From contig OZ025699.1 of the NCBI GenBank assembly GCA_964019335.1, forward strand, positions 310,001-374,000: a DNA stretch of 64,000 bases, given 5' to 3'. Under the pieces are notes generated by a model, which saw nothing but the letters and a program-made list of their open reading frames with translations, was not told where the DNA came from and ran no database searches. A program made the translations under genes and the position numbers. The DNA is from Diplonema japonicum (Eukaryota > Protista > Euglenozoa: Diplonemea). Of this stretch, positions 19,872 to 52,639 are shown piece by piece (position 1 is the first letter of the stretch; the number at the start of each line of letters is the position of its first letter).

Positions 19872-20177
19872 ACTCGATGATTTAAAGGAAGCCGGTGGGG
19901 GCACCCTGCACCAGCACCATTTACTTGATTACAGGGGGCGCACCTCGGCCTAGCTGTAGCTTCTTTTGCGTTCCGCGTCGTGTCCTTAATGCAGCTCAAC
20001 CCCAGCCGGGGCGCCCCGGGTAACCAAGATTCTGAGCCCGTGTAGTTTGCTGCCTGTTCGCCACCCAGAGCATCTGCTTCTTCCACTCGGGCGCTACCGG
20101 TGATGACCGACGGGGAGGTCAACAGCGAACAACACATCTGATGTACTTCTTTATATTTCCATGTTATCCCCACCACC
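19872..20177 (-). mobile_element. HDV-ribozyme-headed SINE, copy 1 (ribozyme 20049-20177, tail type 1)
   Basis: P1 GGTGGTG/CATCACC, L3 TCCCCGTC, J4/2 GCGAA. Confidence 0.8.
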
Positions 20178-20344
20178 TGAAATTTTAAAAGAAATTTCAC
20201 TCTGTCCCCAATAATGGCAGCCACGGGCCATAAACACCTAAGTCTTGCCCATAATTGAGCTATCAAGGATTATCAAATTATGAGAGGGGGGTAATCAGAT
20301 TATAGGGGGGGTTAGGAGTGAAAAAATTTCTGAACTATCAGATA

Positions 20345-20930
20345 AAAAAAATAATTCTTTATGACTACATGTCTTTGTTGTTCGCACGAGCAAAAAAAAG
20401 GTTTTAAAAAGCTGCGAAAGTCTTTTTTTTTTTTTTTTTTTTTTTGCTCGGCACAAGTTGCATATAACAATTATAAAATCATTTTTTTGAAAGATAAATA
20501 TTTGTAACAAAAAAAATAATTCTTTATGACTATATGTCTTTTGTTGTTGGCGCAAGCAAAAAAGGTTTTTAAAAAGCTGCGAAAGTTTTTTGCTCACACA
20601 AGTTGCATATAGTTATAAAATCATTTTTTGAAAGATAAATATTTGTAACGAAAAAAAAAAAAAAACAAGCCTTGGTCTTTTCAATTGAAAAGACCCAAAA
20701 TGGCTCTGGTGTAAGCTAGTTGTTTTCGCCCGAGCAAGAAGTTAGAATTATTTCTTTGCGCAGGGAAGTTTCCGTGTGCTACAGCTTCAGTCTGAAAAGA
20801 ATGAAAGTGTAAAAAAATAGTTAGTTCTTTATGACTACACGTCTTTGTTGTTCGCACGAGCAATGCTCGGCGCAAGTTTGACACATAGTTATAAAATTAT
20901 CTTTTCTGAAACATAAATATTTTGTATAAA
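20345..20930. repeat. three degenerate tandem copies of an AT-rich unit
   Basis: TTCTTTATGACTA...GTCTTT(TT)GTTGTT at ~20355, 20520 and 20826. Confidence 0.7.
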
Positions 20931-20959
20931 AAAAAAATATATATATATATATATATAAA

Positions 20960-21010
20960 CGAACAACACATCTGATGTTTTTCTTATATTTTCATATTAT
21001 CCCCACCACC
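20960..21010 (-). mobile_element. 5'-head-only remnant of the ribozyme-SINE
   Basis: P1 strand plus J1/2 only, followed by (TA)n on the sense strand. Confidence 0.7.
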
Positions 21011-21225
21011 TTAAAAAAAAAAAAAAAAGAATAAGTACAGTAAGCAGTGGCCGCCAAGAGAAGCAAATATTTTACAACACGGCCAAAGTGGGGAAGGAAA
21101 AAAACCCAACTGAACGTCCGAAAGGAAAACCTGATTCTCCTTTTACAGTAACAATATACGTGATAAAAGTGTTGATGGCACCCTGCACAAGCACCAAACA
21201 GCGAAAAATCATAGAAATTAGAAAT

Positions 21226-22869
21226 CTAAGAACACTCCACAGTCTTTCTCAGCTTCGTCATGTAAATTGCAATGCAAGCCGGCGCGCTGGCCGTATCTTT
21301 CTTAATGGACAGAAAGCGGATCGCCTCCCCCCTATTCCCCATCAGGAAATGCTTCCCCGCTTCATTATAGACATCCCAGGGATTCTCATCAAGTTGGTAC
21401 ATCCACTCCGCCTCTTTGCAAGAACTCTGACATGGTGCCGCCCAACCTGTAATTATTTCGTAGGCAAGAATGGAACCCTCGCAAAGTCTGATCACAAGAC
21501 GCATAGGGCAGGCGTAAGACACTTCACTGTACACAGTCCCGCTGGTGACGATGTTGAGGTTCTCTTGCCTGCAGAACCTTTCTAGTTGTGAGGCTTGAAC
21601 GGCGACCTTTCCGATGACAGCGATCGACATCAGCTCGGCACACCCGAACGACCCGCAGTGCGCTGACCCAGTGGAAATCCCAAAAGTTGTGATAATATAA
21701 TTCTCAGCTAGTACTGACTGGACTTCCAAGGTGGTTTCAACAGCCATTTTCGCATGAGCAGCGCATCGCCTGGAGGTGTTAAAAGAGGAGTGGATGTGAT
21801 CGCCAACGACGACCCCCACGACACCACTATGAGAGCTCACAGAATGGACAACCTGAAGTGCGAACGAAGCAAATCTCGAAGTGAATACAGCCGCGTCCTC
21901 CACCTGCTTGTGCGTCCCAAGCATGTTCGCAACAAAACACGATACCCGTTTACACACCTTATCAGCTATTAAAGGTGTACTGTTTGAAGAAGCCGAAATT
22001 GGGGTTTGCCTACTACCGCCCTTCCCAGAACTACTCTCCCCGTCGGGGTCACCACAATTAGATTCTTCAGAATTTAGTTGAAGGCAAGATTGCGGGAGAT
22101 AAGGTCGGTACATGTAAAGGTTGTTTAGAACATCTGAGAATGCTGTGTATAATGGTGGGGGTAGGGGTGATTCGTTGATGGCTTGCTCAGCGGACTCGAG
22201 GTCGAAACGTGATAAGTAGCTTGCGATGCGCTCGGCGGCAGTGATGACAGATTTCATGGACTCCTGTTCCGCGTGGAGATGCAGTGCAAAATGACGTGTG
22301 AAGTAGAAGTCCAACAAAAGCACGAGGCATTGCCCGAACAGACGCGCCACACCTGACGGCACATCCTCCTTACAGGGCAACGCTTCACAGTTACACAGAA
22401 TTTCCCGCCTCTTTTCTTGCGACGGCAAGAAACCCAAATCGTACATTCCAAAACGAAAAGTGCTTTCCATCGTTGCGATGTGCAGCCAAACAATAATCAC
22501 TCCGACAATGTTGCGGGGGACCCTGTGAGGCAGAGCGCATACAAGAGCGATATCTAGGCAAACTACAACGGCGGTCCAGCTCGCATGTGATTTGGTTGAG
22601 CCTTGCAACAAGTCGGAGGCCACTATACTGACCATGCCGGTGTAGAGGGCGAACTCGATGACGGAGTTTCTCGGCTTCTTCTCTTTTACTATCTGCGCTA
22701 GTAGAACGACATCCCCAACGAACGCAACCGAGAATTCGAAGTTTCCCAAGAACATCATCCCCCCGAACAGGCCTACCCCTACCAGGGCCGACAGAAATAT
22801 CACCCTCTTCCTGAAAGCCGTAGTTCCGTCATCGTCTGGTAGCTCCAGCCACTTCAAGCAGCTTAACAT
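21226..22869 (-). CDS. multi-pass receptor-like class III cyclase, degenerate-domain-only type
   Basis: ~5-6 TM, CxCxxLPC loop, LRPYLP-like linker, cyclase fold with ANMLG/VGD/VAVQASQL, C-terminal EWMYQL; start at MLSCL inferred. Confidence 0.8.
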   Translation of the reverse strand: MLSCLKWLELPDDDGTTAFRKRVIFLSALVGVGLFGGMMFLGNFEFSVAFVGDVVLLAQIVKEKKPRNSVIEFALYTGMVSIVASDLLQGSTKSHASWTAVVVCLDIALVCALPHRVPRNIVGVIIVWLHIATMESTFRFGMYDLGFLPSQEKRREILCNCEALPCKEDVPSGVARLFGQCLVLLLDFYFTRHFALHLHAEQESMKSVITAAERIASYLSRFDLESAEQAINESPLPPPLYTAFSDVLNNLYMYRPYLPQSCLQLNSEESNCGDPDGESSSGKGGSRQTPISASSNSTPLIADKVCKRVSCFVANMLGTHKQVEDAAVFTSRFASFALQVVHSVSSHSGVVGVVVGDHIHSSFNTSRRCAAHAKMAVETTLEVQSVLAENYIITTFGISTGSAHCGSFGCAELMSIAVIGKVAVQASQLERFCRQENLNIVTSGTVYSEVSYACPMRLVIRLCEGSILAYEIITGWAAPCQSSCKEAEWMYQLDENPWDVYNEAGKHFLMGNRGEAIRFLSIKKDTASAPACIAIYMTKLRKTVECS

Positions 22870-23153
22870 TCCCCCCCCCCCCTTCGCCGGCTCCTTTTTT
22901 TTTTTATCTACACACGAAAAAAAAAAAAAACAAATAAAAAGAGAAAGAAACAAACGTGGCTGCCTTTCCCACGTACCAGGGATTAAGCAGAGGTTGTTTC
23001 CATGGCCCATATCAGTCTATCGCCGGAAAGAAATATAAAAAAAAAAAAAGGAAAGTAACAAAACAAACGGAAGAAGAAAAATAGAATGTACAGAGCTAGA
23101 GATTATGACGGCCTAGGGTCACGGTTCCACCAAAAAAAAAAAAAAAAAGAAAA

Positions 23154-23456
23154 ATGGGCTTTGATTGCAACACTAGGTGGCATTAGCGTGCAACGAAGCA
23201 CGAACTACCTACTTGATAACAGGGGGCGCTCCTCGGCCGAGCAGTAGCTTCTTCTGCGTTCCGCGTCGTGTCCTTAATGCATGCGGTGTGCTCAACCCTA
23301 GCCGGGGCGTCCCGGGTAACCAAGATTCTGCGCTCGTGCTGTTTGCTGCGCGTTACGTTCTTCCACTCGGGCGCTACTGGTGATGACCGACGAGGAGGTC
23401 AACAGCGAACAACACATCTGATGTACTTCTTATATTTCCATGTTATCCCCACCACC
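23154..23456 (-). mobile_element. ribozyme-SINE copy 2 (tail type 2), ribozyme disabled
   Basis: Deletion removes P4 3' strand and J4/2; P1.1 GG changed to AG. Confidence 0.8.
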
Positions 23457-23559
23457 TTTAAAAAAAAAAAGGGGGGGGTTATTCGGAGCCTTGCAATTCA
23501 CTCAAAGCACTGATTATCTCTTATCTCTAATCTCTTCGTAACTGTTGTGCTCTGAAATG

Positions 23560-23735
23560 CAGCTGTGCGGTCGAGCCTTGGATGTCGGTGAAGACGATGG
23601 TGGAGCGGTTTGACTCGCTGTTAACCGGTGTGTCGCACCTGGAGTGCTTCGAGGTAACCTTAGTGACGGCAGAGCACGTTGATGGTTATCACGCAAGCTG
23701 TCCAAGACCTTCCTGTGCCTTTCACTAAAATGGTT
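23560..23735 (-). pseudogene. patchwork remnant of a cyclase gene
   Basis: Short blocks matching IVFTDIQGST and TM-region DNA of neighbouring genes, joined by deletions. Confidence 0.6.
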
Positions 23736-23791
23736 CTACAGAAACGGCCAGATACCTCTTATCATTATTCGTTCTCGTTGCTGTAAAAGAT

Positions 23792-25888
23792 TTAAAAGTC
23801 CTCCACCATGCTCGTCCCGCCAACCCTGTAAACACAGAAGGTGTCAGTGGGACCCTGATGCGTTCCCTGTTTCTCGCCAAGAACGTTACCTTCGATGTGG
23901 CTACTTTCGTTCACAGTTCCGTAGTAACAGAACACGACGTCTTCCTTCGCTTTGGAACACAACTCGAAACACACATCAACACACTCCCCCAGAACCGCCA
24001 CGAACTTCTGCCTCGCACTCCCCACAGTCCCATGCCGAACCTCGCTCGTCGCCACCCCAATGTGGAGGTCGCACTGCATCGCATTCCCTTGAAGCATCTT
24101 AACAAAGGCAAGGGAGTTCTCCACATGTGTTGTGCAGGAACGTGATGTGTTCCACCCAACAGCGACCCTGCTCCCCTGCAGAGACACGATCACCCCGTGC
24201 GACCTCTCCGTGCACATCGCGATACGGGAAAGCACATCATTCACCACAACTGCAACACCCTCCTTCATCCCCACACGCATGTCCACCACCCCCACTGTCG
24301 CTGACAAGGTGTGATGAAGAGGAGTGTCTGCCACAGTCAGAGTGCTTCCTATTGAGCGCATAGAGTCAAACGAACGACTGCTGTTGACTGTTTCCACACT
24401 GAGGTTCCTGTCCCTTCTGTTTGTCGGAGAGAGTTGTGATTCGACAAAGGCTTGCCTCCCTTGAAGGCTTCTGGGAAGGAGCAGGGAAGGGTTGATGTGA
24501 GAAGTGATCCCCTTCAGGACCGTCGCCCCCATCGGAAGAACACAGACAGACGCCAGATCCAGTTCCACCCCCTCCAACACCTCAGGAGTCACAGCCACAG
24601 CTCCCCCAACACACACCCCTTCCATCCGAGCCGCCTTGTTCACTGTCCCCCCGAAGTAGTCGTACCTCCCTGTCAGTGTGTTCAACTGAACATCAACATC
24701 ACCACAGTGTACCCCAACACGGACACGAAGCCCACACCACGGACCATCGCTGTCCAAAGCAAGGTATTCCAAAGCCAGCAGTGCAGAAGGCCACACAGCA
24801 GAGACGAGCCCCTCTTGAACAGAGAGCCCAAAGGAAACAGCATCAGAAGAGCTCTCAAAGGCGACCATGAAGGCATCACCAATGGTCTTCACCTCGTAAC
24901 CGTTGTGCTCGGAAATGCATTCCCGCATCACTGTGTTGTGCACACGAAGACCCTCCTTCATCCCCTCAGGGCACGCCTCCCATGTTGCCGTCGAGCCTTG
25001 GATGTCAGTGAAGACGATGGCGGAACGACCTGAGTTGCTACCAGGTGCAGCGGTTGTGCCGGACCTAGAGAGCTTGGAGGGGGCAAACTCAACGAAGAGG
25101 GCATCAGGGAGGTAAGGGCGGTAGATGTGGAGGTTGTCGAGGATGTCGGTGAAGGCGGCATGGAGGGGAGGGGGGAGAGGAGAGGTGCCGATGATGGACT
25201 CTGCCTCAGTGAGGTCGAAGCGTGCCAGGCTGCCTGCAATGTGCTCAGCTGCAGTGATCACAGACTTCATGACCTCCTGCTCCGCGTGGAGAGATTTGGC
25301 AAAGCCACGGGTGAAGTAGAAGTCCAGGAGGAAGACGGTAGAGTTCGCAAAAAACACTGAACAAGCCTCTACAAAAGGAATAGAACAAGGGAGGGTTTCA
25401 CATTCACAGAACTTCTCTCTTCGGGCTGCTTGTGAAGGGAGCGGGGTAAAAAAAGAATCAGCCTCAAAGAGGCCGAAGCGAGATGTCTTCTCGACAGCAA
25501 GAAGCAAGAGCCACGATAACAGAGATATGATGAGAACCGCAGTGACACGTGAAGGAAGCTGGCATACGAGTGCTATGTCGATGATTAAAACGAAAGCTGT
25601 CCAAACTCTTCCTGTGCCCTCTACAAAAACACTCAGATCAGTAAGGATGTAGAATATCGACAACATGTAAAGCAAAGCCTCCACAGCCAGCATGCTTAAC
25701 TTCTTAGTTACAACAAGCCGCACCGCAAGTACCAAAAGGAACGCAACAGGCACAGACGATCCATACTTTCCGGATAATATGAAAGCTCCACTAGAAATGC
25801 AGCCAGCGGCTGTCCCAATGAGGATGATTTTCTTGGCCATTACCATTGGCAGCTCGTCACCAGGCAGAATAAAACGCTTGAATACCAT
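23792..25888 (-). CDS. multi-pass receptor-type adenylate cyclase (catalytic plus degenerate domain)
   Basis: FTDIQGST..W, YEVKTIGDAFM, RVRVGVHCG and YDYFGGTVNKAARME are intact; second cyclase-like domain lacks the catalytic Asp/Asn/Arg. Confidence 0.9.
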   Translation of the reverse strand: MVFKRFILPGDELPMVMAKKIILIGTAAGCISSGAFILSGKYGSSVPVAFLLVLAVRLVVTKKLSMLAVEALLYMLSIFYILTDLSVFVEGTGRVWTAFVLIIDIALVCQLPSRVTAVLIISLLSWLLLLAVEKTSRFGLFEADSFFTPLPSQAARREKFCECETLPCSIPFVEACSVFFANSTVFLLDFYFTRGFAKSLHAEQEVMKSVITAAEHIAGSLARFDLTEAESIIGTSPLPPPLHAAFTDILDNLHIYRPYLPDALFVEFAPSKLSRSGTTAAPGSNSGRSAIVFTDIQGSTATWEACPEGMKEGLRVHNTVMRECISEHNGYEVKTIGDAFMVAFESSSDAVSFGLSVQEGLVSAVWPSALLALEYLALDSDGPWCGLRVRVGVHCGDVDVQLNTLTGRYDYFGGTVNKAARMEGVCVGGAVAVTPEVLEGVELDLASVCVLPMGATVLKGITSHINPSLLLPRSLQGRQAFVESQLSPTNRRDRNLSVETVNSSRSFDSMRSIGSTLTVADTPLHHTLSATVGVVDMRVGMKEGVAVVVNDVLSRIAMCTERSHGVIVSLQGSRVAVGWNTSRSCTTHVENSLAFVKMLQGNAMQCDLHIGVATSEVRHGTVGSARQKFVAVLGECVDVCFELCSKAKEDVVFCYYGTVNESSHIEGNVLGEKQGTHQGPTDTFCVYRVGGTSMVEDF

Positions 25889-27044: not shown

Positions 27045-27360
27045 ACTCGATGATTTAAAGGAAGCCGGTGGGGGCACCCTGCACAAGCACCATTTACTTG
27101 ATTACAGGGGGCGCTCCTCGGCCTAGCTGTAGCTTCTTCTGCGTTCCGCGTTGTGCCCTTGATGCGTGCGGTGTGCAGCTCAACCCCAGCCGGGGCGCCC
27201 CGGGTAACCAAGATTCTGAGCCCGTGTAGTTTGCTGCCTGTTCGCCACCCTGACATCTGCTTCTTCCACTTGGGCGCTACCGGTGATGACCGACGGGGAG
27301 GTCAACAGCGAACAACACATCTGATGTACTTCTTTATATTTCCATGTTATCCCCACCACC
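27045..27360 (-). mobile_element. ribozyme-SINE copy 3 (ribozyme 27233-27360, tail type 1)
   Basis: All HDV core pairings retained. Confidence 0.8.
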
Positions 27361-27440: not shown

Positions 27441-28453
27441 ATATATATGAGTTAAAGGAAGTCTTTGTGAGACGCCCCCTTGTTCTCATCTTCTACCTGC
27501 ACCTATCCCCTTTCAGCAGCGGGTTCTCCTCCTTTGGTGGTCTTGCCGGCCTTCTCCCCAGCCTGGCCGCTCTTTCTCTTCGTTCTCTCGCCCATTGTCC
27601 TTTCAATGCCTCTAGGTCATGCTTGGTCTTCGGTGATGCAAATATCGCCCTCCTGTTCCATCCGATCACCGCCTTTGTCCTCCCGATGGATCGTAGTGTG
27701 TGCACCCTTGTGCTCGGCTCAGCTGGGAAGGCCCTCCTTCCTTTCACCTTCTTCAGTACCCTCCCTAGCTCCCATGTGTGCCAGATCTTCTTCATCAGTC
27801 CATGCAATCTCCTCGCTTTCTGCTGTACTTCTGCGAGATCCCCCAGCTTCCCTCCAAGGGTCTTCCCGGTCACGTTCTCGAAATCCAGTGCCAGCTCCAC
27901 CGTCGACACTGACGTGTTTCTGCTGCCTGCATACCAGCGCAGTTGCCGCATCCACCTCAGCACCTCCTTCGTGTACTCCCGTAGGACATCCCCTGCCGGT
28001 AGCTTGCCGAAGTCCTTGTCCGACGGTACTGGGTGTTCTTGACCTTGTGTGATCTCCAGCCACTGGTGTGTGTGGTACACCTCCTGCCTCTTCGCTTGTA
28101 GGGCTGCGTCCCGCTCCCCCACCACCGCCAGCAGGTACCTCTGCGTTCCTTCGAGCCTTTCCCTGACATCCTTCCCTGCTCCCCTTGGCAGGATGCCATG
28201 CAGCTTCGTACACGGTTCCAGCCCCCTGCGCGTCATGCCTTCGTGTTCTTCCCGCTGTTGCACTTCCTTGGCCTTTTCGCACTCCCACAGTGCGTGCTCC
28301 AGCATGTTGGGCAGCTGTTGCTCCTGACCGCAGATGTCGCAGTGTGCCGTCGTGGGTTCGGCCTGCTTAGCTTCTTGCTTCCTCGCCTCCGCAATCAGCC
28401 ACTTTTCGGTGTCCTGTCCTTCCTCTTCTTCTTCTTCTTGTTCATCTTCAGCC
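27441..28453 (-). mobile_element. 5'-truncated non-LTR retrotransposon, family B
   Basis: ORF end with CDIC...HALWEC zinc knuckle; near-identical to 50499-51512; (TA)n-T-rich sense tail. Confidence 0.85.
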
Positions 28454-28884
28454 AAGAAACAAAAAAAAAAAAAAAAAAAAAAACCTCAGCCTTAAAATAA
28501 AAGAACTTAAAAAATAGCAGAACAAAAAAAAAAACTTATCCCCCCCCCCCCCCCCCCCGGGCTATGTTGGCAAAGAAGCGCGTTTTCCAAGCTTTTTTTT
28601 GAAAATATGGAAACGCATGGATTTTTGGAAAATATGGAAACGGCTACGGAAGCACGGCCCCCAAACCCTTTCCATCCCCCTCTTCCTCCCGTTGTATAAG
28701 ATATAAAGAGAAATCGAAAACCCTTACTCATACTCCCTCAAAAAAAAAATAATATATATATATATAATAGAAGTAAACTAACCTACGGGAATGGAAATGC
28801 CCATAAGAACGACACCTTCGTCCGGGGTGTGACAGGAAGATATACTTAGGCAAACCGCTCAAGGTAGTAGGTGTGCATACTGAT

Positions 28885-36542: not shown

Positions 36543-36866
36543 ATGGGGCTTTGATTGCAACACTAGGTGGCGTCAAGCGTGCAACGAAGCACGAACTACC
36601 TACTTGATAGCAGGGGGCGCTCCTCGGCCGAGCAGTAGCTTCTTCTGCGTTCCGCGTCGTGTCCTTAATGCGTGCGGTGTGCTCAACCCTAGCCGGGGCG
36701 TCCCAGACCAAGATTCTGCGCTCGTGCAGTTTGCTGCCTGTTCGTCACCCTGAGCATCTGCGTTACGTTCTTCCACTCGGGCGCTACCGGTGATGACCGA
36801 CGAGGAGGTCAACAGCGAACAACACATCTGATGTACTTCTTATATTTCCATGTTATCCCCACCACC
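36543..36866 (-). mobile_element. ribozyme-SINE copy 4 (tail type 2)
   Basis: Full length; starts 46 nt after the stop codon of 36913-38586. Confidence 0.85.
36733..36866 (-). ncRNA. HDV-like self-cleaving ribozyme (reference copy)
   Basis: P1 GGUGGUG/CAUCACC; 43-nt J1/2; P2 GCUGUUG/CA(G)GCAGC; P3 ACC/GGU; L3 UCCUCGUC; P1.1 GG; P4 CGCCCGAGU/GCUC(A)GGGUG; J4/2 ACGAA with the catalytic C. Confidence 0.8.
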
Positions 36867-36912
36867 TTTAAAAAAAAAAAACATTTTCGCATCACTACAA
36901 TGCCGTGGCACC

Positions 36913-38586
36913 TTAGAAAGCAGAAACTGTGTCTGATTCCGCTTTGAGGATTCTTGCAAGCTTCGTCACGTGATCTGCGACAAAGCTGGGCAAGTCCCTC
37001 TTGATACTCAGGACACGGAGGGATTCCTCCTTGTTCCCCATCAAGTAGTGCCTCCCTGCCTGGTTGTAAACCTCCCAAGGACTCTCTTGTAACTCATACA
37101 TCCATTCACCAAGAGCGTTGTTCTTCTGCGTGTCATGGCCAACCACCTCATAAGCAATGTTGTCAAGGTAGGTTTCCAACAATATGCGCATGGTGACGCA
37201 GTAAGAAAGCTCATTGTACATCCCATCGCTGCAAATGACATCGAGGGAGGCGTGCTTGCAGAACCTCTCCAGTTGTGAGGCTTGAACGGCGACCTTTCCG
37301 ATGACACCGATTGACATCAGCTCGGCACACCCGAACGACCCGCAGTGCGCTGCCCCTGTAGAAACACCAATAGTACATTGCACGCCTTCAACAAGATTGT
37401 CTTGAAGATCAATGGCGGCATTGATGGCTGAACGGGGATGTAGGGGGCATCTTTTTGTTGCGTTGAACGACGCGTGGACGTGGTCGCCCAGAACGACACT
37501 TACAATACCGCTGTGCGTTTTCACCGCACGAAGTGACGCCTCCACAAAACGGGTGAATCTCGACCCGAAGCCTCCCGGATCAGACACTACAGCATGCGAC
37601 CCCAGCATATTCGCCACTGTGTACGAGACCCTTCTTTTATCTATAGCAAGAAACAAGGAGCTCCCTTCTGACTGCAACGACTGCAAACGAGGGTCAGCCC
37701 CCTTGCTCATCCTCGTCTCTTGCGTGTTTATGGTCGAGTCTTCCTCACCCAAGTTCACATCCATCGGGAAGCTTTCGCCCTGCAAGCAAGACTGCGGTAA
37801 GTAAGGGCGGTAACTGTACAGATTTCGAAGTACACTACTTAAGGCTTCGTATAATGGTGGGGGTAGTGGTGGTGATTCCTTGATGGCTTGCTCTGCGGAC
37901 TCGAGATCAAAACGTGACAAGCAGCTTGCGATGTGCTCGGCAGCGGTGATCACAGACTTCATCGACTCCTGCTCGGTTTTCAGCGTCTTTGCAAACCGTC
38001 TGGTGATGTAGAAGTCGTATAAAAAGATGGCGGATTGTCCGAAGAAATAGTTAAATGATTCGACTGCTGGGATGGCACAGGGAAGCGTTTTGCAATCGCA
38101 GAGAACCTCCCATCGAGACTGTTGCGAAGGAAGGGTGAATAGACCCCCGTTGTCGATTTCAAACAGACCGGCCCGCACAACACGTTCCACAGCGACCACC
38201 AAGAGCCAAGCAAGAACAATGGAAACAAGGACAATAGATACGCGAGGGGGCATGTTCGTGACGAGAGCGATATCTGCGAGGACAACAAACGCTGACCACG
38301 ACCGCATAGTGTGGTCGGATAAACTGATCCAATCCGATATTATAAAATTAACCGCATACGCGTACAAAAGAATCTCCACAGACAGCTTGCTTACACGTTT
38401 TGTTGCAAACACGTAGCCCCCTGCTCCTAGCTGTGCGGAGAAGCCGACAGCTGTGTAGTAGTCCCCAGATGACATCATTAGTGGAATTATAATAAGAGAT
38501 ACAAGAGTGGACCACACCAGGACTTTCTTCGTCATTGTCACATGCATGTCGTCGCCAGGCCGCAGCACATATTCGATGAGGAACAT
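36913..38586 (-). CDS. multi-pass class III cyclase, degenerate-domain-only type
   Basis: ANMLG, LGD, VAVQASQL, EWMYEL. Confidence 0.85.
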   Translation of the reverse strand: MFLIEYVLRPGDDMHVTMTKKVLVWSTLVSLIIIPLMMSSGDYYTAVGFSAQLGAGGYVFATKRVSKLSVEILLYAYAVNFIISDWISLSDHTMRSWSAFVVLADIALVTNMPPRVSIVLVSIVLAWLLVVAVERVVRAGLFEIDNGGLFTLPSQQSRWEVLCDCKTLPCAIPAVESFNYFFGQSAIFLYDFYITRRFAKTLKTEQESMKSVITAAEHIASCLSRFDLESAEQAIKESPPLPPPLYEALSSVLRNLYSYRPYLPQSCLQGESFPMDVNLGEEDSTINTQETRMSKGADPRLQSLQSEGSSLFLAIDKRRVSYTVANMLGSHAVVSDPGGFGSRFTRFVEASLRAVKTHSGIVSVVLGDHVHASFNATKRCPLHPRSAINAAIDLQDNLVEGVQCTIGVSTGAAHCGSFGCAELMSIGVIGKVAVQASQLERFCKHASLDVICSDGMYNELSYCVTMRILLETYLDNIAYEVVGHDTQKNNALGEWMYELQESPWEVYNQAGRHYLMGNKEESLRVLSIKRDLPSFVADHVTKLARILKAESDTVSAF

Positions 38587-40783: not shown

Positions 40784-40818
<35 letters not shown>

Positions 40819-41760
40819 TTAAAGGAAGTCTTTGTGAGACGCCCCCTTGTTCTCATCTTCTACCTGCACCTATACCCTTTCAGCAGCGGTTTCTCCTCCT
40901 TTGGTGGTCTTGCCGGCCTTCTCCCCAGCCTGGCCGCTCTTTCTCTTCGTTCTCTTGCCCATTGTCCTTTCAACGCCTCTAGGTCATGCTTGGTCTTCGG
41001 TGATGCAAATATCGCCCTCCTGTTCCATCCGATCACCGCCTTTGTCCTCCCGATGGATCGTAGTGTGTGCACCCTTGTGCTCGGCTCAGCTGGGAAGGCC
41101 CTCCTTCCTTTCACCTTCTTCAGTACCCTCCCTAGCTCCCATGTGTGCCAGATCTTCTTCATCAGTCCATGCAATCTCCTCGCTTTCTGCTGTACTTCTG
41201 CGAGATCCCCCAGCTTCCCTCCAAGGGTCTTCCCGGTCACGTTCTCGAAATCCAGTGCCAGCTCCACCGTCGACACTGACGTGTTCCTGCTGCCTGCATA
41301 CCAGCGCAGTTGCCGCATCCACCTCAGCACCTCCTTCGTGTACTCCCGTAGGACATCCCCTGCCGGTAGCTTGCCGAAGTCCTTGTCCGACGGTACTGGG
41401 TGTTCTTGACCTTGTGTGATCTCCAGCCACTGGTGTGTGTGGTACACCTCCTGGCGCTGTTCCTTCACCATCTCCCGTTCGCGTCTCTCCACCGCCTCTG
41501 ACATGATCTCTGCATCCGCCACCATGTCTTCGATGTTGGCCTGCGTCGGGTCAATGGGTAGGCACTTCACGAGCGTGTGTTCGAGCTCCCCGTTCAGGTT
41601 GTGGATTGTGTTCACCGTAACCTTACTGAGCTGCCCTCCTCCTCTTTTCTGCAACTTGTTGAGCTGCGTCTGAATGGCTATCAGCCTGCCTCGCATTTTC
41701 TCCAGCCGTACTTGCATGACCGACGCTGCCCCACCGAGCCAGTTGTTGTCGGTGCACATA
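40784..41760 (-). mobile_element. family B 3' end fused in frame to an unrelated coiled-coil segment
   Basis: Identity with the other B copies stops at ~41453; the upstream 300 bp encode different sequence. Confidence 0.75.
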
Positions 41761-41825: not shown

Positions 41826-42098
41826 ATATATATGAGTTAAAGGAAGTCTTTGTGAGACGCCCCCTTGTTCTCATCTTCTACCTGCACCTATCCCCTTTCA
41901 GCAGCGGGTTCTCCTCCTTTGGTGGTCTTGCCGGCCTTCTCCCCAGCCTGGCCGCTCTTTCTCTTCGTTCTCTCGCCCATTGTCCTTTCAATGCCTCTAG
42001 GTCATGCTTGGTCTTCGGTGATGCAAATATCGCCCTCCTGTTCCATCCGATCACCGCCTTTGTCCTCCCGATGGATCGTAGTGTGTGCACCCTTGTGC
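41826..42098 (-). mobile_element. short 5'-truncated family B copy
   Basis: Near-identical to 27441-27713; A-tracts on both sides on the + strand. Confidence 0.85.
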
Positions 42099-43578: not shown

Positions 43579-43887
43579 ATATATATGAGTAAAAGGAGGC
43601 CGGTGTTGGCGGCGCCCTGCCCAAGAACTGTCTACTTGATTACAGGGGGCGCACCGCGGCCGAGTTGTAGCTTCTTCTGCGTTCCGCGTCGTGTCCTTAA
43701 TGCGTGCGGTGTGCTCAACCCCAGCCGGGTAAGATTCTGCGCTCGTGCAGTTTGCTGCCTGTTCGTCACCCTGAGCATCTGCGTTACGTTCTTCCACTCG
43801 GGCGCTACCGGTGATGACCGACGTGGAGGTCAACAGCGAACAACACATCTGATGTTTTTCTTATATTTTCATGTTATCCCCACCACC
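43579..43887 (-). mobile_element. ribozyme-SINE copy 5 (ribozyme 43754-43887, tail type 3)
   Basis: L3 TCCACGTC; tail ends CTCATATATATTT like family B. Confidence 0.8.
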
Positions 43888-44610
43888 TAAAAAAAGAAAA
43901 AGAAAACTTTTTTTTTCCTTTTTATCTCTTTTCTTTTCCCTCCCTCCATCTCTTCCTCTCAAGTTTTGGTAGTCCTCCCCCCCCCCCCACTTTCTTGAAC
44001 TTCTTTTCACCTCTTTTCCCCTACCTCTCCGTGGTTCCCAGTGAACATGAAAGAATGAAAGTAAAGAAAAAAAAAAAAAAAAACAATAAACCTTTCCACA
44101 CTTTTTTTTTCTCGTCTTTATTAAAAGAGATTAGAGGAGGAAAAACGTATTTCCTTCTCAAAATGCAATTTCTTTTGGCACCACAAAAAAAGCAAATTGC
44201 GACCTGCCAGTAGTGGGTCAAAACCATAAGGTCAAAAGCCAGCTCAATACTCCATAAAAAAAAAAAATATATATATATATGAGTTAAAGGAAGTCTTTGT
44301 AAGACGCCCCCTAAAAGAACACTTTGATTTGGGAAATTGACTTTTTCGGTTTTTTGGCCTGTGGGCTTAGTGGTTAAAAAGACCTATTGTTCTGAGGACA
44401 GCCTTATGTACTACCTGTTTTCCCGCATCTGGCACGGTGGTAGCCAGATGTGAGCCTTCTCACACGGCGGTAGGACGCATTCGTCCTTCTCGGCCCCGCT
44501 TGTACTCCCCGCGGGGTAGGACACAGCTGTCAGCAGTAGAAGGATAAGCCCAACAATGCTCCCACCACTACTCTTTTTAGCAATAACAAAAAATTTTCAT
44601 TATCAATATA

Positions 44611-45365: not shown

Positions 45366-45601
45366 ATATATTGTTTTTTCTTGTTCAAGCAGAAAAAAAA
45401 AATAAAAAAATAAAAACAAAAAAGCTTTAGACAAAATCTCGTCTCTTGCAAAACCCTCTTGGAAAAGAGAGCGAGGAAAAGTGCTGCATTAAGGTCCACC
45501 GCTAGTTCCGCCTTGGAAACTTGCCTGTCCTTGCTCCACTTTAGGGCTTTCAACCAGTTGAGTGGGAAAAGTATTTCTTCTGCAGCCCATGTGGAGTTTT
45601 C

Positions 45602-47434
45602 TCATTCTTCGTCGGTTGTGTACAAGGAAGTTCCCACTGAATTTAGACTTTTCTGAACTCCTGCAAATCCCAGGATTGGGGTGACTTCGTTGTTCGTCTC
45701 CCTACGTTCCACGTTTCTTGCTGCCGGCTTGGCACCGCTCGGCAAGGTGTCAATATGCAACATCTTCAACATCTGTATGTGCTCAGCAACCTCATCACTG
45801 CCGGTGAAGGGTATAGCGAGAAGGCGGAGGGACTCCTCTGTGTTCCCCATCAGGAAGTGTTTCCCTGCCTCGTTGTAAGCTTCCCAAGGGTTCTCATCAA
45901 GCTGGTACATCCACTCGTCGTCGTCCTTCTCCTTGACAGCCTGCTCAGAGAGGACCTCGTAGGCCACCACATGGTACCCTTCCTGCATGGTCAGAAGTGC
46001 CAGCACAATGCGAAGCCGGAAGGCATGCGACACTTCACTGTACACAGTCCCGCTGGTGACGATGCTGAGGTTCTCTTTCCTGCAGAGCCTCTCCAGTTGT
46101 GAGGCTTGAACGGCGACCCTTCCGATGACAGCGATCGACATCAGCTCGGCACACCCGAACGACCCGCAGTGCGCTGCCCCAGTTGCGATGCTCATCGTGG
46201 TGATCATGTCGCCAGAGCTCAGCTCGGGGTGAAGCATCACAGCCGTCTCCACTGCAGCTTGTGCATAGCTGGCACACCTCTTGGTTGCGTTGAAGTACGA
46301 GTGGATGTGGTCTCCAAGGACGATACCCACAACACCGTTGTGACTCTTCACCGAGCGGAGCACCTTCTGCACGAAGTCGGAGAACGTATGACAGAAAGCA
46401 GCATGGTCCGAGATGGCCTTGTGTGTCTCCAGCAGGTTCACCACAAGGTACGACACCCTCTTCTCAATTGTGGTTGGCAGCTTATCAATCGACATGAGTG
46501 AAGAGCAGAACGACCCCGAGCGACGATGGCCCTTATCGAGGGTCGGTGTGTTAATAGGTGGCGTACCGGTGCCGGCGGTGCCTGAGATATTGATGCTGTC
46601 CTCGGAGCTCTCACTACCCCCCACGTTTTCAGGGAAACAGGACTGCGGGAGGTACGGAATGTAAATTCGAAGGTTTGCAAGAATATCGGAGAAGGCGGTG
46701 TGGAGTGGCGGGGGCAGCGACGATCCTTCAATGGCTTGCTCGGCGGACTCAAGGTCCAAGCGGGACAAGCAGCTTGCAATGTGCTCGGCAGCGGTGATCA
46801 CAGACTTCATCGACTCCTTCTCGGCATGCAAAGCTTCCGCGAAACTCCGAGTGAAGTAGAAATCCAGGAGGAAAATGATAATCTGCCCAACCCCAACATA
46901 CAGGGATTGAATCCAGGGAATAGGGCAAGGGAGGGTGTCGCAGTCACAGTACGTCTCCCTCCGTGTATCCTGCTCAGGCAACTCAAAGAGGAAGAACCTG
47001 GAGTCAAACAAACCGAAACGAGCAGAACGCTCAACTGTGATGAATGTCACCCATAAAATTACCACAGCCGTGAGGATCTTGGTGACGCGGGGGGGGAGCC
47101 GGCACACCAGCGCTATGTCAATGAGGACTATGAAGCTTGACCAAGATCTGCCAATACCGAGTGCTATTGCACTCAGATCTGCCAGCAAGTAGTACAGTCC
47201 GTACGCGTAAAGAACAAACTCCAGCGACAACAAGGATATCTGTTTGGTGATCATCAGCCTTATAAACACGAGAACTAGTGGAACGTACCCAATGCAAAGC
47301 CTGAACCTGCCATCGGACATTATCAACACCGCCGATATAGTCCCGGTCAGCGTGCCGCAGACTATAATCTTTTTGGCGATTGCGATTTGCTGGGAGTCAT
47401 CTGGGGACGCGGCTCTGTTTAAAATGCAGGACAT
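45602..47434 (-). CDS. multi-pass class III cyclase, degenerate-domain-only type with a C-terminal extension
   Basis: Near-identical to 38763-40433 over most of its length; start MSCIL inferred. Confidence 0.85.
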   Translation of the reverse strand: MSCILNRAASPDDSQQIAIAKKIIVCGTLTGTISAVLIMSDGRFRLCIGYVPLVLVFIRLMITKQISLLSLEFVLYAYGLYYLLADLSAIALGIGRSWSSFIVLIDIALVCRLPPRVTKILTAVVILWVTFITVERSARFGLFDSRFFLFELPEQDTRRETYCDCDTLPCPIPWIQSLYVGVGQIIIFLLDFYFTRSFAEALHAEKESMKSVITAAEHIASCLSRLDLESAEQAIEGSSLPPPLHTAFSDILANLRIYIPYLPQSCFPENVGGSESSEDSINISGTAGTGTPPINTPTLDKGHRRSGSFCSSLMSIDKLPTTIEKRVSYLVVNLLETHKAISDHAAFCHTFSDFVQKVLRSVKSHNGVVGIVLGDHIHSYFNATKRCASYAQAAVETAVMLHPELSSGDMITTMSIATGAAHCGSFGCAELMSIAVIGRVAVQASQLERLCRKENLSIVTSGTVYSEVSHAFRLRIVLALLTMQEGYHVVAYEVLSEQAVKEKDDDEWMYQLDENPWEAYNEAGKHFLMGNTEESLRLLAIPFTGSDEVAEHIQMLKMLHIDTLPSGAKPAARNVERRETNNEVTPILGFAGVQKSLNSVGTSLYTTDEE

Positions 47435-48333
47435 TTTGGGTTTTCTCCCCCCAACCACCACCCCCCTGTTTTTTTTTTCTTTTTTGTTTTGTTAAAAAAT
47501 TCCAGCAACCTCTTTATCTTCTCTCCGCGTTTTTGGTAGTATTTTGAAGAAAAAGAAAAAGAAATTTGAAATCTGTCGGCGAACCCGAGGGTAATCAACA
47601 GGGCAAGTCGACGAAGCCGACGGAAGCAGGCACCTCCACGGGGTCCCCACTGGGCGGCGCGCAAGGCACCGGCAAAGACACACGCTGACGTCTTTGTTGC
47701 CCCGCCGCGTGAATGGAGATTGCCATAGGTGCCATCAGAGCTGAGAAGGCTGATTGATATCAAAGCGAACGCCATGTAGAGAACGCACAGGAGGAGCAGG
47801 TGGAATCTTCGCTGACGCCGGGGCGAGGCGCACACACGGCGAGGTGGAGAAGAGCGAGGTTGTTACAAGATAGCATAAAATAAAAAACTTCGTTTTTGAA
47901 ACAATGAATATTTCGAGGGTTGAAATCCTGCACGGCTAGTGCTGAATGCTGAAAGCGACTGTGTTGAAGCCATTGGCAAAGGTAAAAAAAGAGGTGGCTT
48001 GTTGTCTGTGCAAAGTCGGGGTTGACCTGTAGAAAGATAAGCCACCACAACTTCTTCAAAAAAAAAAAAAGAAAAAATGGATCAAAAGAAAACCCTCGAA
48101 CACGCTGAGGCGCAGATAATGGTTTATTTGAAAAGGATTATATTTAAATATTGAAATAGGAGGGGTTCTCCCTCTGATTCTGGGTTGTGGGAACCATCGT
48201 CCTCGGGATTCCTCTTCATCACCCTTTATAGGTAGGTACCTCTATAAAAATTTAAAAAAGAAATACTCCCTTGTCTCTCTTGGCCCTTTCTTTCCTCTTC
48301 TTTTTTTTAAAATAAGAGGGGGGGAAAAAAAAA

Positions 48334-50281
48334 GGCGATGTTTAAGGGCAAATCCCACTCGAGGACCACCCTTAGGGGGGGTGGGGGTCTATCTCTTGAT
48401 GCTTCCTTTTTGGAGCCTCGCTTTCGTTCCGATGGCGGATACCAGTGTCTTTCGCAGACGGTTGATGCGGTCCTTCTTCAGGTTGGTCTTCAGCTCTCTT
48501 AGCCTGTCCTGGGTTTCTCGTGAGGCGAAGATCGGTCTCCTTGCAAAGCCTATCGCCGCCTTCCCTCCTATTGCCATGAGGGACTTCACTCTCGTTTTGT
48601 TCTTCGCCGGGAAAGGCCTTTTCCTTCTTGTAATGCGCACCTGTCGTTCACCTTTTGGATCAGTTTCTTGATCCTTCGCGCCTTTTCATCCTGCGTCATT
48701 CCCAGCGATCTTCGTGTCGTCGCTTCGAAGTCTAGGGCTAACTCCACCGCCGTCACCTCCGACGTCGTGTCTTCTTTAACCCATCTTAGCTCCGACATCC
48801 ATTTCAACAGCGACTCCGCGTACATCCGCAGTATCCCACTTGTCGTCCCGAGCTGTTCCAACGTCGGCGTCAAGTGCTTTACTCCTACCACTTTCCGTTC
48901 CCACGGCAGTTCTCCTCCAAAATCCTCCACTTGGATCAGTTCTTCATCACGTTTTGCTACTATCATCGCCAGGTACCTCTGCAACCTCTCCAGGTGTGCA
49001 AATCCGTGCCCCCTCGGCAAGATCCCGTGCAGTTCCAGGCAGAGAGGCCAGCCCGACCTGTCGCGTAGCGGTTCCAACCCGTCCCTCGCCAGCTCTTCCA
49101 GCGCAAGTGGGCATTCGTACAGCTGGTGCCGTAGCAGCGTCACTGTGTTCTGGTGTACTGCTGTGCATATGTCGCATCTATAATTCTGAGGAAGCATAGT
49201 CTCTCCGGGTGGTCTCGTCCTTTCTTTTCAAGTCATCATTGTCCGGTTCCTCTTCCTCACTTGCCGGGTCGAGCGGAACGGTTTTCGGTCCCGCACTGGC
49301 GTGTGGGCTTATGTAGGGGACTGCTCCTGCTATGATCCTCCTGATCTGGTAGGCTACCACCGGATCCCTCTCCTCCTTCCACAGCCTATTCGTTTCAGGG
49401 TCAGCCCCAGCCTCGAGTCCTCGTACCGTGCTCCTTTCCTTCGTGAGGTCCCCGCACCGGGCCTTCCTCACAGCTTCCCTGAAGACGTGTCCTCTTTCTG
49501 GCCATCCCATGTTCTTGCAGTCCGTCAATCGGCTCCAGCTCCATCCGATGTACGGCAGCCATCTTTTCATCAGGTTCCCAACCGGACCTCTTGGCGCCCC
49601 CCCTTCCACGTAGCGTTCTGCTATTTTCTGCAACCTTTGTCGCAGTCCTTCCTTTTCCATGCCCTCGGATATCATTTTGAGGGACCGGTACGCCACTAAT
49701 GAGGTAGGGTCGTTGGTGTGTCCCTTCAGCAGGACTGCATTCACAGCAATAGGCGAGCGGCCACGGTGGTGGGGGCCCCATAGGCATACTGTGATCCTCG
49801 TCGTCAATTTCTTGATCGTTTCCTTATTCGGCGGTGAGAAGGGGCTCGCGTATAGGCAGGAGGGCAGTATCGACGAGCTCACAAAGTGCGCTTTGGTTTC
49901 GAAGGCCAGGTTCGTGTTCCCCAGTCTATCCAGGGACCCGAATGCTTTGGTCGATGGGGCGTTCCATGTCGTTCCTGCTTCCATGCTCAGCTGCACCCCG
50001 AGTGCTCTTGCCAGCCTAGCACCTGCTTCAGTCTCGCGCTCGCCCACAGCCGGTAGATGGTGCTGGTCACCGTGATTGGCCGGTGGTTTAGGGGTGCCGA
50101 CCCCTCCCCTTTCGGTGTGAGCGTTACCAGGGCTGTTGTGATCTGCTCCGGCCATTGTCCTGTTCTCTCAACGAGGTTGAAGAGATCCGCGAATCCGCTG
50201 AGGATGGGCTTCGGCAGTCGCTTCAGCTCGCTGATGCGCCATCCATCCACTCCGCACGCTCCTTTGTCAGGCTTTTTCCTG
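48334..50281 (-). mobile_element. non-LTR retrotransposon family C, truncated, RT core deleted
   Basis: DGW..ELK, WPEQ..ALVTL.PK, RPITVTSTIYRLWA (RT N-part) joined to LGVQL; CDIC..HQLYEC; sense end AAACATCGCC-T9. Confidence 0.85.
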
Positions 50282-50498
50282 ATTAAAAAAAAAAGAAACT
50301 CACAACAAACAGGGACTACTATGTCAGGGCAAGTTATTCTCCTTAGCGTGAGCTCTTGTATTTACATATCCCCCCCCCCCCCACTTTTAAATTCCACTTT
50401 CTGTTTCAACATTGCCAGGCCGTTCAGGCACCAGTTTATAAAGAGAGCCAATGCACGAAGAGAGAGCTTAAATTCGTTTCTTTTTTCGACAAACAAAA

Positions 50499-52145
50499 AT
50501 ATATATGAGTTAAAGGAAGTCTTTGTGAGACGCCCCCTTGTTCTCATCTTCTACCTGCACCTATCCCCTTTCAGCAGCGGGTTCTCCTCCTTTGGTGGTC
50601 TTGCCGGCCTTCTCCCCAGCCTGGCCGCTCTTTCTCTTCGTTCTCTCGCCCATTGTCCTTTCAATGCCTCTAGGTCATGCTTGGTCTTCGGTGATGCAAA
50701 TATCGCCCTCCTGTTCCATCCGATCACCGCCTTTGTCCTCCCGATGGATCGTAGTGTGTGCACCCTTGTGCTCGGCTCAGCTGGGAAGGCCCTCCTTCCT
50801 TTCACCTTCTTCAGTACCCTCCCTAGCTCCCATGTGTGCCAGATCTTCTTCATCAGTCCATGCAATCTCCTCGCTTTCTGCTGTACTTCTGCGAGATCCC
50901 CCAGCTTCCCTCCAAGGGTCTTCCCGGTCACGTTCTCGAAATCCAGTGCCAGCTCCACCGTCGACACTGACGTGTTTCTGCTGCCTGCATACCAGCGCAG
51001 TTGCCGCATCCACCTCAGCACCTCCTTCGTGTACTCCCGTAGGACATCCCCTGCCGGTAGCTTGCCGAAGTCCTTGTCCGACGGTACTGGGTGTTCTTGA
51101 CCTTGTGTGATCTCCAGCCACTGGTGTGTGTGGTACACCTCCTGCCTCTTCGCTTGTAGGGCTGCGTCCCGCTCCCCCACCACCGCCAGCAGGTACCTCT
51201 GCGTTCCTTCGAGCCTTTCCCTGACATCCTTCCCTGCTCCCCTTGGCAGGATGCCATGCAGCTTCGTACACGGTTCCAGCCCCCTGCGCGTCATGCCTTC
51301 GTGTTCTTCCCGCTGTTGCACTTCCTTGGCCTTTTCGCACTCCCACAGTGCGTGCTCCAGCATGTTGGGCAGCTGTTGCTCCTGACCGCAGATGTCGCAG
51401 TGTGCCGTCGTGGGTTCGGCCTGCTTAGCTTCTTGCTTCCTCGCCTCCGCAATCAGCCACTTTTCGGTGTCCTGTCCTTCCTCTTCTTCTTCTTCTTGTT
51501 CATCTTCAGCCTCGTCTTCATCCTCGTCTTCTTCTCCTTCCGCCATCGGGATGTGCTCCACCGTGTCCGTGCGCCATCCCCGTGGGTTGATGTAGAACAC
51601 TGCCCCCGAGATGATCCTTCGCACGTCCCTTGCTGCAATCGGGTCCGTCACCACCAGCTTCCTCCACAGCGCGTTGGTCTCCGCTGCTGCCGCAGCTTCC
51701 ATGCCCCCCATGGTGCTCCGTTTGCTCATGATTTCCTGTGCTTCCGCCCGCCTGAGTCGGTCCCTGATGTAGTGCTTGTAGGGCTCCTTTTCCAGTGCGT
51801 GGGTGTCCTTCAGCTGTGCCCAGCTTAACTTGATCTGAGGCAGCCACCTTTCCATCATGATGCCCACCGGTCCCACCGGTATCTTCTTCCCGCTGTACCG
51901 TTTGGCAATGGCGTCGCAGCGTGTCCACAGCTTGTCGTCCTTCTTGCAGGCTCTGTATAGGAGCATAAGTGCTCTGTATGCGGCTGTCATCTGTGGGTGG
52001 CTCGTGTGTCCCGGCAGTGTCACGGATAGTACTGTGCCTGGGTTCCTGGTGCAGTACTTCTGCCCCCAGAGCGCGTACGTGGTCTCCTTCACCAGCGTGG
52101 CCATTTGTCCCGTTTTCGGCGGTGAGAATGGGCAGTCGTAGAGAC
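50499..52145 (-). mobile_element. 5'-truncated family B copy (longest)
   Basis: Open ORF with GPVG motif, acidic tract and zinc knuckle. Confidence 0.85.
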
Positions 52146-52315
52146 AAAAAGGGGGGGGGGGGGGAGGAGCAATGCAATTGATATTGAGAGCGTAAAAGAT
52201 TTGTGTTGTGAGCGCGAGAGGTATCAACTAGTTTAATAACATTGTTAAAAAAACAAATCTCTTTAAAAAGAAAAACTCAAAGTACAGGACAAGCCCCCCG
52301 CTAGAGGGAAACAAA

Positions 52316-52639
52316 ATGGGGCTTTGATTGCAACACTAGGTGGCGTTAAGCGTGCAATGAAGCACGAACTACCTACTTGATTACAGGGGGCGCTCCTCGG
52401 CCGAGCAGTAGCTTCTTCTGCGTTCCGCGTCGTGTCCTTAATGCGTGCGGTGTGCTCAACCCTAGCCGGGGCGTCCCAGACCAAGATTCTGCGCTCGTGC
52501 AGTTTGCTGCCTGTTCGTCACCCTGAGCATCTGCGTTACGTTCTTCCACTCGGGCGCTACCGGTGATGACCGACGAGGAGGTCAACAGCGAACAACACAT
52601 CTGATGTACTTCTTATATTTCCATGTTATCCCCACCACC
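52316..52639 (-). mobile_element. ribozyme-SINE copy 6 (ribozyme 52506-52639, tail type 2)
   Basis: Near-identical to copy 4; starts 165 nt after the stop codon of 52805. Confidence 0.85.

Follow-up and report, generated by a model that had tools for sequence, protein, structure and literature searches.

Long interspersed elements (LINEs) headed by a ribozyme, together with their short derivatives, are established for R2/SIDE (PMC3774820) and for L1Tc/NARTc, ingi/RIME and SIDER (PMC3185411, PMC4035085). In R2, variable 5' junctions accompany cleavage at the element's own end, and the distance between P1 and P1' ranges from 23 to over 700 nucleotides (nt; PMC3774820). Large ribozymes resembling that of hepatitis delta virus (HDV) are activated by a J1/2 helix (PMC4908430). 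We analyzed a 64,000-nt stretch of the Diplonema japonicum genome (contig OZ025699.1, positions 310,001 to 374,000; hereafter the window), which comes from a 62.5-Mb assembly. It carries copies of a short retroposon type of about 320 bases, here named T1, that opens with a predicted HDV-like ribozyme; T2 to T13, and T2', denote the other ribozyme-headed types of the genome. The best explanation of the whole, to which we assign a probability of roughly three in four, is a LINE-mobilized retroposon freed from host RNA by its 5' HDV-like ribozyme. Judged from sequence, the T1 ribozyme probably excises the element RNA from long host transcripts, a route known in insect and trypanosome elements and unreported for diplonemids.

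Diplonemids are among the most abundant marine microeukaryotes, and to our knowledge their mobile elements are essentially undescribed. In our literature search, no paper connected HDV-like or self-cleaving ribozymes with diplonemids. The search turned up a single genome paper, on Diplonema papillatum, which lists retroelement open reading frames (ORFs) and does not mention ribozymes.

T1 copies and their common 5' end

The original prediction, made from the letters of the window, described six minus-strand copies and a stub that share their first G. Alignment from this base (G1) bears this out: the copies share the minus-strand start GGTGGTGGGG..., and their upstream flanks diverge exactly there. 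T1 positions are counted from G1 of the reference copy (36866, minus strand). The copies are as follows.

36543-36866, minus strand: T1 reference copy, subfamily A, intact, 324 nt; G1 is 36866
52316-52639, minus strand: T1 copy, subfamily A, 99% identical to the reference; intact ribozyme at 52506-52639
23156-23456, minus strand: T1 copy, subfamily A, with a dead ribozyme; a natural negative control
27045-27360, minus strand: T1 copy, subfamily B, its tail resembling the one on the T2 LINE; the P4 loop is shorter in its 128-nt ribozyme (27233-27360)
19872-20177, minus strand: T1 copy, subfamily B; ribozyme at 20049-20177
43579-43887, minus strand: T1 copy, variant with a B-like tail; ribozyme at 43754-43887, A at L3 position 4
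20960-21010, minus strand: T1 stub, the first 51 nt (P1 5' strand and J1/2), followed by (TA)n and a T run

T1 is about 305-326 bp long, and the two subfamilies represented in the window, A and B, differ over the last 40-60 nt. A 28-nt core, GCTGTTGACCTCCNCGTCGGTCATCACC, occurs six times in the window compared with no occurrence in 100 shuffles. ORF 36913-38586 has its stop codon 47 nt upstream of the start of the reference copy. The 22 nt missing from the copy at 23156-23456 take in the P4 3' strand, the CGAA of J4/2 and the first part of the P2 3' strand, and this copy also has a G-to-A change in P1.1; because of these lesions we regard its ribozyme as dead. Variation among the five intact copies was said to fall in L3 position 4, J1/2 and P4. 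The alignment upholds this, with one further variable site, an R at the base before CGAA.

A genome-wide count, which the original prediction had proposed, gave 653 exact matches to the 18-nt 5' end of T1 and 676 to a 19-nt body probe (reversed-pattern controls, 0 for both). A first-look DNA search of the genome returned about 1,400 candidate copies (1,411), the best 40 of which are 97-100% identical. Across 34 distinct copies the 5' end is one and the same, and flanking sequence diverges at G1. Among 20 body-probe sites without an exact match to the 5' probe, about 12 have a complete but point-mutated 5' end, two follow a T run and are clearly 5'-truncated, and the remainder are old rearranged arrays. 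Ragged 5' ends, which had been named as evidence that would count against a ribozyme, were looked for across the genome; the ends are not ragged, because most of these 20 sites keep a full, point-mutated 5' end. T1-like sequence is also present, at 91-97% identity, in two other organisms among the assembled contigs of public runs, a source that is uninformative on RNA ends. These contigs have the same 5' boundary (36866), and they match the downstream gene at about 92%. The family is therefore common to close relatives.

The predicted HDV-like fold and its comparative test

The first ~134 nt of T1 were proposed to fit the nested double pseudoknot of HDV, and every helix named in that proposal was found. 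P1 is GGTGGTG/CATCACC, P2 is GCTGTTG/CA(G)GCAGC with one bulged G, P3 is ACC/GGT, and L3 is TCCNCGTC. GG comes after P1, there is a P4 stem, and CGAA lies directly before the P2 3' strand. The strands follow one another in T1 as they do in the HDV ribozyme (the order of HDV and CPEB3 is that given in PMC4836649). In the reference copy the parts are placed as follows.

36733-36866, minus strand: HDV-like ribozyme domain, 134 nt
36860-36866 (5' strand) and 36789-36795 (3' strand), minus strand: P1, T1 positions 1-7 with 72-78
36817-36859, minus strand: J1/2 with its closing hairpin, T1 positions 8-50 (43 nt)
36810-36816 (5' strand) and 36733-36740 (3' strand), minus strand: P2, T1 positions 51-57 with 127-134, one bulged G
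36807-36809 (5' strand) and 36796-36798 (3' strand), minus strand: P3, T1 positions 58-60 with 69-71
36799-36806, minus strand: L3, T1 positions 61-68, reading UCCNCGUC
36787-36788, minus strand: GG of P1.1, T1 positions 79-80, which can pair with the CC of L3
36745-36786, minus strand: P4, T1 positions 84-93 with 111-121
36741-36744, minus strand: CGAA of J4/2, T1 positions 123-126; the candidate catalytic C is 36744

P1 is paired 7/7 from base 1, P2 forms 7 bp straight after CGAA, and both P3 and P1.1 are complete. The domain measures 128-134 nt across T1 copies. P1.1 is intact in 5/6 window copies and is broken (AG) only in the deleted copy at 23156-23456. A scan of the window with an HDV-like descriptor, suggested as a check on the original prediction, recovers among T1 exactly the five intact copies. 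It also recovers one more ribozyme (63228-63368) and two weak matches; shuffled windows give a mean of 1.6.

The main and strongest support for the predicted T1 fold is comparative. The same putative architecture, with different helix sequences, heads at least 12 other LINE and short interspersed element (SINE) families of the genome, all of which begin just after a T tract. These were reached with a genome pattern for the core, RCC-TCCNCG-N(1-2)-GGY-N7-GG, whose sampled sites resolved into 13 types; searching the genome with the core pattern yielded 82 and 68 sites, where reversed controls yielded about 20 and 15. For multi-copy types the element start was read independently, as the point where flanking sequence ceases to agree between copies. 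The first six bases pair 6/6 with the six before GG in 12 of the 13 types, a result obtained at 4 of 2,626 nearby positions, and eight distinct P1 sequences occur among the types. When strands are swapped between families, a full P1 is formed in 22/156 cases, and P2 reaches 6 bp or more in 14/156, the latter compared with 12/13 for matched strands. P3 is ACC/GGT in seven types and GCC/GGC in six. P2 comprises 6-9 bp directly after C(G/A)AA in 12/13 types; in T9, J4/2 is CTGA. The C of CGAA/CAAA that directly precedes the P2 3' strand in 12 types is a candidate catalytic cytosine. J1/2 spans 40-72 nt across types, and its closing helix has a different sequence in eight of them. Conservation of the pairings had been put forward as a test, and they are kept across types with compensatory changes in P1, P2, P3 and P4.

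A covariance model was built from nine T1 copies only, covering P1, the J1/2 hairpin, P3 and P4. It finds T6, T9, T4, T8, T5, T2, T3 and T7 at full length, starting within one base of the first base of the element, with scores from 44 down to 7.5 bits. MAFFT alignment across types was out of register, and coordinate-based parsing and covariance-model alignment were used in its place. On the structure-fitted alignment, 90.2% of cells are paired compared with 73.2 ± 1.4 in shuffles (0/500 as high), 18 pairs are changed on both sides compared with 11.5 (0/500 exceed), and the covariation score is 0.36 compared with 0.14 (0/500 exceed); slid controls are 36-48% paired. P1 is 96% paired, and 6/7 of its pairs are changed on both sides. 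The fit of the alignment used P1, P3 and P4, with P2 and P1.1 left outside it. P2 is nonetheless 70% paired, with double changes at 4/7 pairs, and P1.1 is invariant, hence without covariation.

The T1 ribozyme is closest to that of T6, which is also non-coding. They have P4 loop sequences in common, and their P4 stems differ by compensatory changes (CCC/GGG in T1, GGAT/ATCC in T6). A LINE donor of the T1 ribozyme was not found among the genome's elements examined. Two metagenome scans returned 20 distant LINE relatives, with no HDV-like core on their 5' side.

Mobilization, the 5' junction and competing explanations

T1 is a non-autonomous retroposon without long terminal repeats (non-LTR), a composite passenger closer to SIDE/NARTc than to a classical RNA polymerase III SINE. 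The original prediction had already called it a retroposon, and this is borne out by the absence of an ORF from T1, tails shared with LINEs, some 5' truncation, a partner with an apurinic/apyrimidinic endonuclease (APE) and a reverse transcriptase (RT), and co-orientation. No head derived from tRNA, 5S or 7SL was detected: Rfam has no family match to T1, and the element opens with the ribozyme itself. In subfamily A, the last ~45 nt match the 3' end of LINE-A (copy L070). In subfamily B, the last 25-40 nt match the 3' end of the T2 LINE, which is 6.2 kb long and has a single long ORF encoding an APE-type endonuclease and a reverse transcriptase; T5, a second ribozyme-headed LINE, adds RNase H. 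The RT region of T2 is 100% identical to an ORF of the EukProt transcriptome data, and the nearest named protein relatives of T2 are from Diplonema papillatum, at about 49% identity. No trypanosomatid is among its 82 protein relatives, which are diplonemid or unnamed, in a word-limited search that leaves a relationship to trypanosomatid LINEs possible. Both partners have left copies in the window.

11962-12031, minus strand: LINE-A 3' end; the last ~20 nt match the tail of subfamily A
50501-52146, minus strand: T2 LINE, the longest of seven 5'-truncated window copies
9194-9231, 14838-14861, 27443-28453, 40810-41453, 41828-42098 and 44275-44312, all minus strand: the other six 5'-truncated T2 copies

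The seven T2 copies range from 24 to 1,646 nt, are 92-100% identical to T2, and all end at the LINE 3' end. This is the pattern of target-primed reverse transcription; it fixes the orientation and indicates recent activity. T1 lies on the same strand as the longest flanking ORF at 24/29 loci, as do 6/6 window copies. Every large ORF in the window is on the minus strand, and several encode adenylate cyclases; window "ORFs" including 27493-28455 and 50551-52227 are LINE fragments, not host genes. The T content around T1 copies is 64% upstream and 86% downstream; T1 inserts in T tracts, on the coding strand of gene arrays that all run in one direction. One clear target-site duplication, of 8 bp, was seen (L007/L008), and T-rich flanks hide duplications elsewhere.

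Two observations concern the LINEs themselves. Related LINE proteins (P0003, P0004, P0042, P0043, P0052 and P0066) have an N-terminal OTU protease domain (PF02338) before the endonuclease and RT; the T2 LINE has no OTU match in Pfam. LINE copies encoding RT (1,429-1,445 amino acids) are dense in a few regions, at ~7-kb spacing (C52:97-256 kb, C51:79-162 kb, C61, C13, C18 and C74), which suggests LINE-rich or site-specific arrays.

At the 5' junction a short spacer, mostly A, AA or AAA, stands between the upstream T tract and G1 in T1 (for example at 36867-36869), and CA, CCA or AA in other families; at L007 the A lies outside the 8-bp target duplication. The spacer A and G1 together make a polypyrimidine-AG, an acceptor-like site. 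In nine of about 653 T1 copies (1.4%) the spliced-leader exon is fused at G1/G2, six as leader plus G2 and three as leader plus G1, and the same fusion occurs in single copies of T2, T4, T5 and T8. As a separate observation, the full exon (...CTGTACTTTATTG) stands directly before G1 (or G2/G3) in at least five families and is itself behind a T tract. One example is in the window.

63369-63406, minus strand: spliced-leader exon before a T4 ribozyme (further loci L013, L019, L026, L059, L077 and L085)

Because nine T1 copies carry the exon, some template RNAs must have passed through trans-splicing; because only 1.4% of copies carry it, this was not the main route. Trans-splicing acts on polycistronic precursors, and the fusions are therefore an indirect sign of polycistronic read-through.

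For T1, we infer Mg2+-dependent cleavage, the absence of a promoter, and release from polycistronic RNA from sequence comparison. In the mechanism that we favor, T1 would be transcribed within host polycistronic RNA, and the ribozyme would cut immediately 5' of G1, giving an element RNA with a defined 5'-OH end that is severed from the upstream gene. By analogy with drz-Agam-2, the closing hairpin of the 43-nt J1/2 would hold P1 and P2 together. The feature recognized by a LINE reverse transcriptase would be the borrowed 3' tail or the U run that follows; the endonuclease of the LINE would nick the A run opposite a T tract, and the RNA would be copied in up to G1. The 5' junction would be left with a few untemplated or unexplained bases, mostly A.

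Several observations weigh against this reading. The G1.U wobble at the base of P1 is absent from T1, T4, T6 and T8, which have G1-C. It is present in T2, T2', T3, T5, T7, T10 and T13 and in an older T1 subfamily (CATCACT), and the first P1 pair on the structure-fitted alignment is GC in six cases, GU in six and AU in two. Rfam scans of the window, T1 and the other types (by gathering threshold and E-value), and genome searches with RF00094 and RF01788, returned nothing at threshold; RF02682 gave 24.5 bits on T9 and 18.9 bits on T6, in the right place and on the right strand but short of its threshold of 44. The pseudoknot-free folding energy is no better than that of shuffles (z = +1.4 for T1 and -0.4 for T6), a result that is expected because of the pseudoknots and that we do not use as support. 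The base before G1 is A in 25/34 T1 copies, which cleavage at G1 alone does not explain. In the other families, conservation of P3, the L3 motif and the P1.1 GG is not independent, because it was imposed by the search pattern. Coding constraint may add to conservation of the core in LINE types, whose long ORF reads it in one frame as [A/T]-S-T-x. An argument that different LINEs read the core in different frames was withdrawn; the long T2 ORF shares the frame of the others.

Some of these points would follow if the T1 fold were real but a relic from the 5' end of a LINE, with an internal promoter at or just upstream of G1 and a slow or inactive ribozyme. The G1-C pair in place of G1.U, and the long J1/2 with its G.U-rich closing helix, fit such a history. 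RNAs that start 1-3 nt upstream would allow the A, AA or AAA before G1 to be copied from a master, and Pr77 of L1Tc is both promoter and ribozyme (PMC3383444, PMC4035085). The A spacer, however, is also found in unrelated families that have other master copies, and at L007 it is outside the target duplication. A promoter leaves unexplained why P1 starts at the first base in 12/13 families. Furthermore, the only differences between the T1 subfamilies are at change-tolerant positions (L3 position 4, the P4 loop and J1/2), and T1 and T6 retain P4 by compensatory changes. On balance, we consider a relic fold behind a promoter unlikely. The acceptor-like junction raises another question, namely whether trans-splicing of the spliced leader at A(-1)G1, behind the T tract, and not a ribozyme, produced the common 5' end. 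The order of T tract, A and G1 resembles a 3' splice acceptor, and leader is joined at G1/G2 in T1, T2, T4, T5 and T8. RNA that had been trans-spliced would, however, pass the leader on to daughter copies, whereas about 99 in 100 T1 copies are without it, and the covarying helices would be unaccounted for. We give this origin of the 5' end very little weight. Still harder to credit is that the match to the HDV fold is due to chance, is a by-product of coding, or belongs to an element that is really a poly(A)-tailed SINE of the other strand. The lack of an Rfam match, the single frame in which LINE ORFs read the core, and terminal T runs that are A runs on the opposite strand can be cited for it. 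Yet P1 5' strands covary with their partners even though they are situated in untranslated leaders, non-coding T1 and T6 retain the fold, and the window has six strong descriptor matches where shuffles have a mean of 1.6 weak ones. LINE ORFs, LINE 5' truncations and SINE 5' truncations all agree on the orientation. Strand swaps, the P1 first-base test, the truncated LINE copies and the covariation counts thus already contradict this family of explanations.

A bolder extension of the ribozyme reading makes use of both activities at the junction. Competing trans-splicing and ribozyme cuts at one phosphate region might make T1 a genome-wide layer acting on 3' ends and mRNA stability, a proposal that we regard as speculative and rather improbable, though worth stating. 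Insertion in a T tract would put a polypyrimidine run and an AG directly on G1. Trans-splicing at A(-1)G1 would then yield a capped RNA, translatable in the LINE types, whereas cleavage at G1 would yield an uncapped 5'-OH RNA to serve as the template for reverse transcription and would truncate the upstream host mRNA. Between 650 and 1,400 SINE copies would lie just behind host stop codons, comparable to SIDER2 in Leishmania.

Release of T1 from host RNA by its 5' ribozyme would matter in several respects if the ribozymes are active. Diplonemids would be a second euglenozoan lineage in which self-cleavage answers the problem of lacking a promoter within a polycistron. Ribozyme biochemistry would gain over a dozen natural HDV-like sequences that covary and have a long, structured J1/2. 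The host would have hundreds of potential RNA-cutting sites in the 3' regions of its genes, and mRNA 3' ends would likely be affected.

Other ribozyme-like elements and comparison with known systems

The additional ribozyme recovered by the descriptor scan belongs to another family.

63228-63368, minus strand: T4-family ribozyme, P1 GGCTGGG/CCCAGCC, P2 GGGGAT/GTCCCC, followed by a decayed ORF

L051 (C11) is a full LINE that starts behind a T tract with a third version of the ribozyme. J1/2 of the LINE types contains an ATG, and the long ORF extends across P2, P3, L3, P1 and P4 (L051:8975-9088, minus strand; L065, L077, L081, L093, L095 and L100). In T2 the first in-frame ATG comes just after the ribozyme, and the ATG in J1/2 is out of frame with the long ORF. 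T11 (LINE-A) has an internally deleted derivative (L095:243-520, plus strand, compared with L096) in which a ribozyme-like head and ~100 nt are joined to the LINE 3' region; the head may be weakened, with P1 pairing at only 5/7. An HDV-like look-alike that is compact (~76 nt) and has a very short J1/2 stands behind a T run at L004:2529-2604 (plus strand) and at about 1195-1265 of the window (plus strand). Its parts are P1 GGGGGCC/GGTTCCT, P2 GTTTCC/GGAAAC, L3 TCCCTGT and J4/2 GCGAAA; the P2 3' strand of the window copy is degenerate. It may be a further, minimal family. A decayed T3-like core, ACC TCCACGG GGT CCCCACT GG, is found at 47632-47653 (plus strand), with no recognizable P1 5' strand upstream.

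Like the HDV and CPEB3 ribozymes, T1 is predicted to form a nested double pseudoknot of P1, P1.1, P2, P3 and P4 (PMC4836649). Positions 1 and 6 of L3 are U and G, the partners of the G25.U20 pair, and the C of J4/2 is directly before the P2 3' strand. T1 departs from them in having G1-C and not G1.U, a J1/2 of 43 nt where they have a few, a one-base bulge in P2, and Rfam scores far below threshold. The long J1/2 recalls the drz-Agam-2 type of the mosquito RTE element (RF01788), in which it forms a peripheral helix (P1.2) joining P1 and P2 (PMC4908430). In contrast to that type, the diplonemid ribozymes have no sequence-model match, and the J1/2 of the LINE types holds an ATG in frame with what lies downstream (out of frame with the long ORF in T2).

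R2/SIDE offers the parallel of co-transcription with the host and release by a 5' HDV-like ribozyme, which would apply to T1 as well, and of an active site near that of HDV (PMC3774820). Variable 5' junctions are common to both, and in both a long distance can separate P1 from P1'. The endonuclease of R2 is restriction-like and its single target is ribosomal DNA, whereas the diplonemid LINEs have an APE endonuclease and use dispersed T tracts of RNA polymerase II gene arrays.

L1Tc/NARTc, ingi/RIME and SIDER (Pr77 being L1TcRz) likewise inhabit a euglenozoan host with polycistronic transcription (PMC3185411, PMC4035085). As in L1Tc/NARTc, an APE and RT LINE and its short non-coding derivatives open at the first base with an HDV-like ribozyme, cleavage being predicted in T1, and the short elements lie in intergenic regions or 3' untranslated regions. 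The published description of L1TcRz sets it apart: it is 77 nt long and begins at C1, whereas the diplonemid ribozymes are 100-145 nt and begin at G1. They also differ from L1TcRz in their HDV/R2-like L3 (UCCNCG), their J4/2 (CGAA or CAAA) and their long structured J1/2. Finally, the diplonemid elements go into T tracts and terminate with T runs, where the L1Tc group has poly(A).

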